Positions 41,646-44,716 of a DNA stretch of 64,000 nt are shown in pieces (position 1 is the stretch's first letter; each line of letters opens with the position of its first letter). Below the pieces are notes generated by a model, which was not told the origin of the DNA, did no database searches, and saw nothing but the letters and a program-made list of their open reading frames with translations. Source of the DNA: Blepharisma stoltei ATCC 30299 (lineage: Eukaryota > Protista > Ciliophora); contig CBFDEM010000051.1 of the NCBI GenBank assembly GCA_965603825.1, positions 124,001 to 188,000 of the forward strand. The letters are read 5' to 3'. The translations under genes were made by a program, and so were the position numbers.

Positions 41646-42509
41646 ATGAATAAAAAACTCAGTATAAATGGAAATGATTTCTTCCTAATTGAAAGAGGGA
41701 ACTCACCTTCATTTCTCACTGAAGATAAGCTTAAATGTTCTATCTGTATGAGTATTATGAATAGAGAAGAAGGAGAAAGTCATCAATGCCAGTCTCCAAT
41801 GGCTCAACCACACTTTGCTAATTTTACTCACTCTGAAAAGAAAGGTATGTTTATTTGCAAGACTTGCGGAAAAGAAATACATCAGCTTATGGTCAGACCT
41901 CATGCAAATATTCATAATTCAAATAAATCAAAAGAATCACCTATTCCTAAGCACGTTGCTAAAAAATCTGCAGGAGTCCAAGGAAAAATTGAACAGGAAG
42001 AGTTGTTAATAATAAATTCGAAAAATCCTCTAGAGCAAAATAACTTTAATAGGATTGTAGTTGAAGAGTCAGCCTTACAGCAGAATGGCAGACCAGATCC
42101 TGTGAATTCTTTAAATATTCTGCCAAGAATAATTGAGGAATATCAAATAGCAAAGAAAAAGCCAAATAGTGATGGAAGCTTGGAAGAGCGAGAGCCTAAT
42201 GAAATAATGAGAGAAAGCAAAGAAAAAGAAGCAAATAAATCGCAAGAAAATGCTATAAAAATAATAAATGATCGTGAAATGCTGCCAGAAAGATCTTTTA
42301 TAAGGGCAGATATAAATTTACCTGAAAACCCTAAACTTCCTTTAAAAAGACAAAGAAATGCTACAAAATCTCCTACTCTAAAAATTATTAAACAAGCTCG
42401 ACGAATACAGATCATTCTTGAAAGATTAGTTACAGTTAATAAAAGAGTTATATCAGCAGATACTAAAGCAGCATTCAAGAAATTATATAAATTGGCTTTT
42501 ATTAACTAA
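41646..42509 (+). CDS. Hypothetical protein with two zinc-finger-like motifs (287 aa)
   Basis: KCSICMSIM...SHQC and FICKTCGKEIHQLMVRPHANIH (C2H2-like). Confidence 0.72.
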   Translation: MNKKLSINGNDFFLIERGNSPSFLTEDKLKCSICMSIMNREEGESHQCQSPMAQPHFANFTHSEKKGMFICKTCGKEIHQLMVRPHANIHNSNKSKESPIPKHVAKKSAGVQGKIEQEELLIINSKNPLEQNNFNRIVVEESALQQNGRPDPVNSLNILPRIIEEYQIAKKKPNSDGSLEEREPNEIMRESKEKEANKSQENAIKIINDREMLPERSFIRADINLPENPKLPLKRQRNATKSPTLKIIKQARRIQIILERLVTVNKRVISADTKAAFKKLYKLAFIN

Positions 42510-42535: not shown

Positions 42536-44716
42536 CTACATTATTACTATTCTTTTTCTGTCCAGCCCAGATTCCAATAAATTTGCTTCTACAAACCTAT
42601 TAAACCCTGACGGTCCACATATCCAAGCTCTTTTTGGGTTATTTTTCCCAAGCTTCACCATAATCTCTGGTATATTTTGATTTCCCTTTTCACTGGTAAA
42701 AATTAATATAAGCTTAAATATATTTTCATCAATTACCTGCTCTGTAGCTTTTAATAAATCAATCGCAAACGCATCTTTTCGGGACCCAAAGGAAACATAA
42801 AGCATTAATTTAAATTCATGAGGATTTTCCCTATTTACCCATAAATAACGCACTAAATCTAAAAATGGAATTAATCCAGTGCCCCCTGCAACGGCAAGAA
42901 AGCTGCCAGATAAATTATCAATCCCTAGTCCAGGTCCTAAAGGTCCTTTTAATAATATAGTATCGTTTATAAGTAAATTATTCAAATAGTTACTAACAAC
43001 CCCAAGTGGATATACCTTAAAAATAAATTTCAAGCCTTTTTTCTCTTTATTTATAGGCTCACTAACCTCATAACCTTCAGCAAGAATTTCTTGTCTTCAT
43101 TTGTCTAAATTTACAAAAAAACAGCTGTAATATCGAGAAATATTTTTTCTTTTATCAAAAACATTAGAAAATGATAGAGGCATCATCAATTTAAAGTGTT
43201 TTCCAAGCCATTCTGCTTTTTCTCAATTTTCGTTCATTTCAAATTCATCTGAAGTCATTGTGATAATAAAATGGTTTTCATTAATTTGATTTTTTTCAAT
43301 AATTTTTCAGGTCATTAAATTTTGGTTGGATTTGTTTGTGCTGATTAAAAAATTTTTTGGGTAGGGAATAGTGGCAATAGATAAATGGCCAGCCATTTCT
43401 AAGGCTTGGATTGTATGGGTATAAGGGTTGTAGTTTTTTTGGCTACTGCAGCCTATCATGTATTTTCCTACATCTTCTCCAATAACATTTTTTAGCATAT
43501 TATAGCCTCCTGGATGATCATATTTGAACCAAGTAATATCTAATACTAGTTCTTCAAGAAATACATATTCTCTGTCTTCTTTGCTAATTTTCTCTATAGC
43601 TTCAATATGAGATAATTGTTTATTTCTTCTAAAATAAAAGGATAAAAATCTTCAATAAGGGCTAATCTGATGTCTAAATTCAAAAAGTAAAATTGGTCCA
43701 ATTACCGCAAACATAAAGCCAATATATGTTTTATTTTGGCTATCATCATATAATTCCCAGCCAAATTTATTATTTACAAGGGCAGAAATCAACAATCCCC
43801 ATCCGACCACCTGATGCAATTTCCTTGCATAAGAAATAGGAAGCAATTGTTTGGAAAAAATTTTCGAAAAAAATGCTGCAAGCCCCAAAACCCCTTCTCC
43901 TACAACTAAAGATAGGATAATAAGCCCGATCACCATATGAGCTTGATTATCTTGATCATCCATTGGCAATATCGCCTCCTCATCTTGGTATCTTTTGCTT
44001 GCACTTCACATAGTCAATCCAATAGTAGCAGCCATCAATAAAAAATGAATAATTAAATACCACGGACCCCATCATTTAAAATATCTCGAAAAAATAATTC
44101 CGATTGGAACTGCACAAGTCCACATAACAGTCAAAATGAGCCCATGTGTATGTCTGTCATCATCTATACTTGAAACTCCAGCAACAACTGGAGCATCTGG
44201 ATTTAATGCAACCGTAATATGAGCTGCTTATTAATTACTCTCAATATCATGCTGAACCCATGACTTTTTGCTTTCAGTTGCACATATCATATCTATTGTT
44301 GAATTCGGGACTATTACAGAATCATATTTATCGCCAGTATCTAAAAGTCGTGAAACAATCGCCATAAAGCCATAATTTGTAAAATTAAATGACTCAAGGT
44401 GGACGTCATTTTTTCCACCTAAAGACTCATCGTCTGGAGGAGTGTCTTCTGTTGAGGAATATAAGTCCATTGCTGTGAGGGTGTTAGAAGATTGGCTTGA
44501 AAGGAGAACTATCATATCAGCACTATACATATCAGAACCAAAGCCGATGCCACATCATCCTGCACTGCACTATATGGATTTTACATTGAAGCTGAATCTT
44601 ACGCTTGTTTGGTTAAATTCGAACCCTATGTCAAGCTTAGAGCATAAGTTTACATAGTTATAGGAAAAAACGAAAATGGGAAGGCATAGGAAAACACCCA
44701 TTCTTAACAGATTCAT
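42536..44716 (-). CDS. DOMON - cytochrome b561 - cytochrome b5 - FAD/NAD(P)H oxidoreductase fusion (716 aa, 2 introns)
   Basis: Signal peptide; GWCGIGFGSDMYSADM, RLLDTGDKYD, WVQH (DOMON); HGLIL, WYLIIH, AHMVIG, RKLHQVVG (four b561 His); DHPGG...H (b5); RYYS, KVYPLGVVSNYL, GPLG, AGGTGLIPF, ICGPSGF (FNR family). Confidence 0.9.
44224..44238 (-). other. 15-nt intron
   Basis: gtaattaataagcag; removes in-frame TAA TAA and links DOMON to b561. Confidence 0.88.
44570..44584 (-). other. 15-nt intron
   Basis: gtaaaatccatatag; joins to the CSAGWCGIGFG DOMON motif. Confidence 0.88.

Follow-up and report, generated by a model that had tools for sequence, protein, structure and literature searches.

CYBDOM proteins are the described systems closest to the gene reported here. 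They include CRR/HYP1 and AIR12-related proteins of plants and SDR2/FRRS1 of animals, and they combine a signal peptide, a DOMON domain with Met and His heme ligands, and a five-helix b561 cytochrome with four His, so that three b hemes stand in line across the membrane. The plant protein CRR, with its signal peptide, DOMON domain and five-helix b561, is an ascorbate-dependent ferric reductase for which ferric-chelate reduction was shown (PMC10784552), and this agrees with the dependence of plant CYBDOM proteins on ascorbate assumed at the outset. The gene in question lies on the minus strand of a 64,000-nt stretch of Blepharisma stoltei ATCC 30299 (contig CBFDEM010000051.1:124,001-188,000), called the window below. 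The N-terminal half of its predicted product has the same layout as CRR. Known CYBDOM members stop after the last helix and use cytosolic ascorbate, whereas the Blepharisma family adds a cytochrome b5 domain and a flavoprotein resembling cytochrome b5 reductase. We computed the gene structure, domain identities, ligand conservation, five-helix topology and family spread. The locus probably holds an intact gene for a 716-residue, type-I-like, four-domain membrane protein that would act as an NADH-driven one-electron relay to an outer acceptor.

The NOX/FRE family, including DUOX, is comparable in its overall plan. A single polypeptide takes electrons from NAD(P)H in the cytosol and, by way of FAD and two b hemes within the membrane, delivers them outside. 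Some members of the family have an extracellular DOMON or peroxidase-like domain as well, DOMON-FRE fusions being present in Naegleria, Albugo and Phytophthora (PMC3591440), and DUOX is mirrored by peroxidase-fused relatives of the DOMON-b561-b5-FNR protein. However, the Blepharisma protein has a b561 as its membrane cytochrome where NOX/FRE enzymes have the six-helix ferric-reductase domain, and an additional b5 heme is inserted in the chain. Its flavin module also belongs to the b5-reductase branch (FAD_binding_6/NAD_binding_1) and not to FAD_binding_8/NAD_binding_6. As judged from its domains, the protein is proposed to work like NOX/FRE, yet it is no member of that family; it is predicted to belong to the CYBDOM line, extended by a donor module.

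Two further systems share parts of this design. Fusions of cytochrome b5 with b5 reductase, such as the heme-FAD fragment of nitrate reductase and Ncb5or/CYB5R4, have the same order of b5 followed by the FAD/NADH domain. NADH-cytochrome b5 reductases, nitrate reductase fragments and Ncb5or are among the best sequence and fold matches. These fusions are soluble or peripheral and feed a molybdenum centre or cytosolic acceptors, whereas the Blepharisma pair is tethered to a transmembrane cytochrome and some ten residues are added between the His ligands of its b5. STEAP proteins are likewise transmembrane heme reductases fed by NADPH through a flavin, and STEAP1 is reported to take electrons from cytochrome b5 reductase (PMC10659578). 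Their transmembrane and dehydrogenase domains are unrelated, and they have one heme and neither DOMON nor b5. The parts and the logic of the Blepharisma protein are thus already known from CYBDOM proteins, b5/b5-reductase fusions and NOX/FRE proteins with DOMON or peroxidase domains, and the fusion itself is present in databases under automatic names. A description or test of the DOMON-b561-b5-FNR fusion was not found in the literature searched, which lay mostly outside subscription journals. The expectation that similar fusions would be annotated in other protists without functional characterisation was borne out in this sense, with database members found and no paper.

Gene structure and public annotation

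The reading frame was followed on the minus strand of the window. Between the ATG at 44716 and the TAG at 42538-42536 it has 726 codons with seven TGA and only three TAA or TAG, and all three of the latter sit within two 15-nt GT..AG segments. Excision of both segments leaves 716 codons (coding span 44716..42539, minus strand) in three exons, the third of which runs from 44223 to 42539 (Table 1). The remaining two minus-strand frames are rich in stops, the local DNA is 31% G+C, and an in-frame TAA stands three codons 5' of the ATG. The earlier note had merged four open reading frames (ORFs) into one 716-residue protein by reading TGA as Trp and removing two 15-nt introns, and the recomputed frame matches this exactly.

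In B. stoltei, UGA encodes Trp, introns are mostly 15 and 16 bp long, and genes were predicted with Intronarrator (PMC9942806). To check the reading of TGA, the stop-free pieces were aligned with 12 homologs, which have a Trp column at four to five of the seven TGA. These columns include the Trp after FVNLDK, which is invariant in all 12 homologs, and the Trp before CGIG. The public protein of the gene, P0027, has W at all six TGA within its span.

The two introns were compared with the same sites in the relatives. At least eight paralogs have intron 1 at the identical position and phase and with the same GTA..TAG form, and the public proteins P0001 and P0004 already have its counterpart removed. 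Paralogs L011 and L017 have no intron at this site and read straight through. At the site of intron 2, the closest paralog (L009, on contig C9) has a 15-nt intron, GTAATTTTTAAGCAG, with the same position, phase, length and both ends, and no other paralog or ortholog is interrupted there. With intron 2 excised, the distance from the DOMON His to the first b561 His is 29 residues, compared with 28-31 in the relatives. On this comparative basis, the locus is read as one continuous coding gene with three exons and UGA as Trp, which confirms the initial observation.

P0027, the model of this gene in NCBI and UniRef, has 529 residues, is truncated at intron 2 and begins at a Met at about 44125, inside the first b561 helix. 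If the annotation were correct, the gene would encode a b561-b5-FNR protein from this internal Met, and the upstream DOMON stretch would be a separate small gene or an untranslated remnant. We regard this as very improbable. Its standing as the database model speaks for it, as does the 3' end of intron 2, which is CAG, unlike the TAG that closes intron 1 and its paralog copies. However, a protein starting there loses the invariant first His ligand of b561, which is encoded 5' in the same frame, and on that 5' side the frame stays open and conserved as far as the 15-nt GT..AG segment that the C9 paralog has in common in position, phase and length. In all other paralogs and orthologs DOMON continues into b561. 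The B. stoltei pipeline excises only introns supported by reads (PMC9942806), and two further paralogs are short in the same way. The two-gene reading was therefore rejected on the conserved upstream frame, the shared intron and the His ligand lost from the short model. Scarcely credible is a decaying paralog with genuine stops, even though the standard code would give ten in-frame stop codons and no other copy scores as low with Pfam for b561 and the NAD domain. Seven of the ten stops are TGA, which is Trp in B. stoltei and falls on Trp columns, the other three lie inside canonical 15-nt introns, and all ligands and motifs are intact. On these grounds, the pseudogene reading was also rejected.

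Comparative evidence thus indicates that the public 529-residue model is wrong and that the 716-residue model repairs it. The public models of the C9 paralog (P0060; L009; 287 residues) and of the paralog at C24:297k (P0002; L019; 662 residues) are N-terminally short likewise, and in each of the three a stop-bearing 15-nt intron left unremoved accounts for the short N-terminus. The annotation lesson is that this gene and at least two paralogs are truncated in public models through one missed intron of this kind.

Domains, relatives and predicted topology

Pfam was run on the pieces between stops, and the further searches used these pieces, P0027 or unbroken paralog ORFs. DOMON (2.1e-12, 47.8 bits, cut-off 32.7), Cyt-b5 (2.6e-7, 31 bits, cut-off 23.7) and FAD_binding_6 (1.6e-5, 25.6 bits, cut-off 21.1) exceeded their cut-offs. 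Ferric_reduct (PF01794) had no Pfam match in the protein pieces, and NAD_binding_6 reached only E 0.28. The motifs listed in the earlier note, GFGSDM, WVQH, the four b561 His, HPGG, RYYS, AGGTG..PF and CGP, are all present, and its domain order of DOMON, b561, b5 and FNR is upheld by Pfam together with the ligand alignment. The features of a CYBDOM protein, namely a signal sequence, a DOMON domain with Met and His, and a b561 of five helices with its four His on four consecutive ones, are all predicted for the translated gene. The N-terminal signal corresponds to the hydrophobic N-terminus encoded in exon 1, and the Stentor, Tetrahymena and Paramecium relatives likewise have a hydropathy peak at this end.

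Ligand conservation was counted over 46 full-length relatives. The four b561 His are kept in 45-46 of the 46 and both b5 His in all 46. In DOMON, the His column is kept in 42 and the Met column in 38. R and Y of RxYS are retained in 44-46 relatives, GTG in 45-46, and CG of CGP in 42-46. The position at which b5 reductases select NADH by an Asp is acidic (D or E) in 39 of 46; the window protein has Asp, but an Arg/Lys-rich stretch precedes it. The first b561 helix retains a basic RY.K motif at its cytosolic end. Judged from the sequence, the two b5 His stand about 10 residues further apart than in classical b5. The domain order is constant in 46/46 relatives, and the linker from the last helix to b5 is short.

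By profile, the FNR part matched 2eix at 4.5e-13, and its best solved relatives are NADH-cytochrome b5 reductases. When a DOMON segment was compared with PDB sequences by phmmer, the sole match, a fungal cytochrome domain (6jt6, E 0.58), was not significant. Structure models were made for the paralog P0001 (719 residues) with AlphaFold2 and the 46-sequence alignment. The whole chain had pLDDT 90 and pTM 0.75. The model has a signal-like N-terminal helix at 2-12, a beta sandwich at 20-187, five long helices at 191-357, a small alpha/beta domain at 372-452, and a barrel and Rossmann pair at 460-718. The helices and ligands of the window protein align with P0001 column for column. Foldseek placed the flavin part at TM 0.79 to 2eix, an NADH-cytochrome b5 reductase. 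Whole-chain Foldseek matches were dominated by FNR, and the N-terminal half was therefore folded alone (pLDDT 89.7). Its fold matched the cytochrome domains of cellobiose dehydrogenase (4qi3, 1.3e-5) and pyranose dehydrogenase, and also the DOMON domain of dopamine beta-hydroxylase. The helical part matched Arabidopsis cytochrome b561 (4o6y) with TM 0.57.

Five helices follow the signal peptide and DOMON in the P0001 models, and the b5 domain and flavoprotein should therefore lie on the opposite, cytosolic side. The odd number of helices and the placement of b5 and FNR opposite DOMON, as first proposed, are thus retained. In P0001, H197 and H265 would bind the outer heme and H229 and H306 the inner heme, as in classical b561.

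The genome scans covered the 41.46-Mb assembly of 64 contigs. Twelve loci have colinear DOMON, b5 and FNR matches. In paralogs L007 (662 residues) and L008 (645 residues), DOMON, b561, b5 and FNR stand in one unbroken ORF, and L011 has an ORF of 741 codons. The fusion is therefore independent of the splicing model, since paralogs carry all four domains in a single unbroken ORF.

Two other paralogs have unusual structures. L014 (G000:C51:544300-548600, minus strand), on the contig of the window gene, encodes at least four tandem DOMON repeats ahead of b561-b5-FNR, all in one frame, and the same 15-nt GTA..TAG intron interrupts every repeat at an identical site. L016 (G000:C51:554000-557100, plus strand) is spread over three reading frames, with frame steps that would fit 16-nt introns, although decay may also account for them.

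The taxonomic spread was taken from an exhaustive profile search and cluster look-ups. Among 1.84 billion representatives, the profile search gave 320 matches below 1e-30, many of them full length. A word-based protein search found 11 relatives with a paralog query, and five, none of them new, with the 46-row profile. Named members, with the four domains by Pfam, are present in Stentor coeruleus, Fabrea salina, Blepharisma japonicum, Tetrahymena utriculariae and Paramecium sonneborni. In the ESM Atlas, the nearest cluster consists of eukaryotic proteins, most of them from Ciliophora.

More distant relatives carry further domains. The metagenome proteins P0134 (L020:6001-9843) and P0101, of 1280 and 1558 residues, have an animal-type heme peroxidase before DOMON-b561-b5-FNR, in a single unbroken standard-code ORF. 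A cluster of such proteins in the ESM Atlas has 179 members. Their layout resembles DUOX with b561 in place of the NOX membrane domain. P0031, from a transcript of Arcella intermedia (2531 residues), and the metagenome protein P0074 (4632 residues) have 12 and 21 DOMON-like matched stretches. One stretch in each matches the profile through DOMON and b561, and in P0074 the match continues into the b5 region. Thus, arrays of DOMON domains on a DOMON-b561-type wire occur outside ciliates too.

Proposed electron path and its alternatives

The genome was scanned for other reductases and for ascorbate synthesis. In six-frame scans with hidden Markov models, Ferric_reduct (PF01794, NOX/FRE) had no match anywhere in the genome, and neither did the ALO domain of GULO/GLDH. 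No free-standing b561 was seen in the genome scan, in which all eight Pfam b561 matches lay inside fused loci. Published surveys report Paramecium without GULO and GLDH (PMC4396506) and 18 alveolate proteomes without ferric-reductase-domain proteins (PMC3591440). Because NOX/FRE, GULO/GLDH and free-standing b561 were all undetected, an electron exporter running from NADH through FAD, b5 and b561 to DOMON appears to be the best reading of the gene.

In this proposed path, the signal peptide would direct a heme-b DOMON domain outward or into a lumen, followed by b561 with two hemes, a short linker, a cytosolic b5 and a cytosolic b5-reductase-like FAD/NAD(P)H module. NADH, or less likely NADPH, would donate to FAD, and FAD would reduce the b5 heme. 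Electrons would then pass to the inner b561 heme, the outer b561 heme and the DOMON heme. The DOMON heme may finally reduce an acceptor outside the cell or in a vacuole; ferric chelates, quinones, monodehydroascorbate-like radicals and a partner metalloenzyme are candidates. The protein would be a transmembrane reductase of the CYBDOM type in which the fused b5/b5-reductase pair replaces ascorbate, the usual soluble donor, and occupies the place at which ascorbate would bind.

Several points weigh against this reading. Two of the domains scored below their Pfam cut-offs in the window, Cytochrom_B561 narrowly (1.5e-4, 22.5 bits versus 23) and NAD_binding_1 (3.8e-3, 18.3 bits versus 22). The breaks at TGA and sequence divergence account for both low scores, and paralogs and orthologs exceed the b561 cut-off. 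The public annotation disagrees with the 716-residue model, since P0027 contains neither signal peptide nor DOMON domain and misses the first b561 His. Splicing of both introns, and with it the gene structure throughout, rests on the alignment of paralogs and orthologs. The structure models describe P0001, which is about 35-48% identical to the window gene, and not the window protein itself. The absences of NOX/FRE and GULO/GLDH are indications and no proof, because six-frame scans meet genes broken by TGA and tiny introns. We infer which cofactors are bound, which way electrons flow, what donates and what accepts them, and where the protein resides. In addition, the potential of a Met/His DOMON heme is usually too high to reduce O2, and the acceptor therefore cannot simply be assumed by analogy with NOX.

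The output of the chain and its continuity were also considered. The same chain may serve another end, in which the DOMON heme would feed a peroxidase or copper monooxygenase partner, or reactive-oxygen chemistry of the NOX/DUOX kind, and not iron. We consider this unlikely, but it draws on several observations: P0101 and P0134 have an animal-type heme peroxidase fused before the same chain, the ESM Atlas has the cluster of 179 such members, no NOX was seen in the genome scan, and the DOMON cytochromes of solved relatives, the cytochrome domains of cellobiose dehydrogenase, hand electrons to partner enzymes. The peroxidase-fused relatives suggest that at least some members feed or serve extracellular oxygen chemistry and not iron uptake. 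The Blepharisma copies, however, have no fused peroxidase, the present analysis points to no partner enzyme, and characterised CYBDOM proteins reduce ferric chelates (PMC10784552). Cycling of quinone pigments, which the earlier note had named beside iron uptake, does not hold as a role of the whole family, which also occurs in unpigmented ciliates (Tetrahymena and Paramecium); the expanded Blepharisma set could nevertheless serve it. Alternatively, b5-FNR could serve cytosolic or membrane acceptors in the manner of desaturase systems while DOMON-b561 is still driven by ascorbate, and the fusion would then provide co-localisation and no continuous wire. The short linker between the last helix and b5 and the domain order fixed in 46/46 relatives make this improbable, as do the lack of a GULO/GLDH domain in the genome scan and the b5-FNR tail on every detectable b561 of the genome. 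In support of separate functions, b5/b5-reductase fusions with purely cytosolic roles exist, and Ncb5or and nitrate reductase are among the structural neighbours. The retained RY.K motif would suit an ascorbate site or a b5 docking site alike.

If the NADH-driven relay is real, the gene family is a natural experiment in which a b561/DOMON wire is driven by NADH through a fused b5/b5-reductase instead of ascorbate. Ciliates, seemingly without NOX/FRE and vitamin C synthesis, would gain a candidate for iron reduction and redox chemistry at the surface or in vacuoles. The module would also offer four hemes and one flavin in a compact single gene for engineered transmembrane electron transfer. Because Tetrahymena and Paramecium, which are genetically tractable, have orthologs, the idea is directly testable. 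A broader proposal is tentative, and we find it more doubtful than not. Ciliates, apparently lacking NOX/FRE and ascorbate synthesis, might use DOMON-b561-b5-FNR as their only transmembrane NAD(P)H oxidoreductase, which would make it a third, independently assembled way of exporting reducing power through a membrane, after NOX/FRE and STEAP. The 12-copy expansion and multi-DOMON forms of Blepharisma and the peroxidase-fused relatives might then be DUOX-like specialisations.

Coordinates and neighbouring gene

Table 1. Features of the predicted DOMON-b561-b5-FNR gene, in positions of the window.
Feature	Position	Strand	Basis
Exon 1: start codon, hydrophobic N-terminal signal sequence, first DOMON strands (44 codons)	44585..44716	-	Aligns with paralog N-termini
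Intron 1: 15 nt, GTAAAATCCATATAG, in-frame TAG	44570..44584	-	Position and phase common to paralogs
Exon 2: DOMON core, candidate heme Met (GFGSDM) and His (WVQH), TGA=Trp at 44557-44555	44239..44569	-	Pfam DOMON
Intron 2: 15 nt, GTAATTAATAAGCAG, TAA TAA, phase 1	44224..44238	-	Same-site intron in closest paralog
Exon 3, first part: last DOMON strand, linker, then predicted b561 (from about 44150) with five transmembrane helices and four His	43655..44223	-	Pfam b561 on piece 43655-44005
TGA=Trp in b561-coding part	44074-44072, 44008-44006	-	Frame reading
Cytochrome b5 domain: HPGG His and second invariant His in PYTHT	43310..43651	-	Pfam Cyt-b5
TGA=Trp flanking b5 domain	43654-43652, 43309-43307	-	Frame reading
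FAD-binding beta barrel (GKHF, RYYS, G..S.YL)	42935..43306	-	Pfam FAD_binding_6
TGA=Trp in FAD barrel	43225-43223, 43099-43097	-	Frame reading; the latter on invariant Trp of homologs
NAD(P)H-binding Rossmann domain (AGGTGLIPF, CGPSG), conserved C-terminus ..IVIM	42539..42898	-	NAD_binding_1 below cut-off; NADH-cytochrome b5 reductase relatives
Stop codon TAG	42536..42538	-	Frame reading

An ORF of 287 codons at 41646-42509 on the plus strand converges on the gene, with about 27 bp between both stop codons. Such tight convergent spacing is usual in a gene-dense macronuclear genome.

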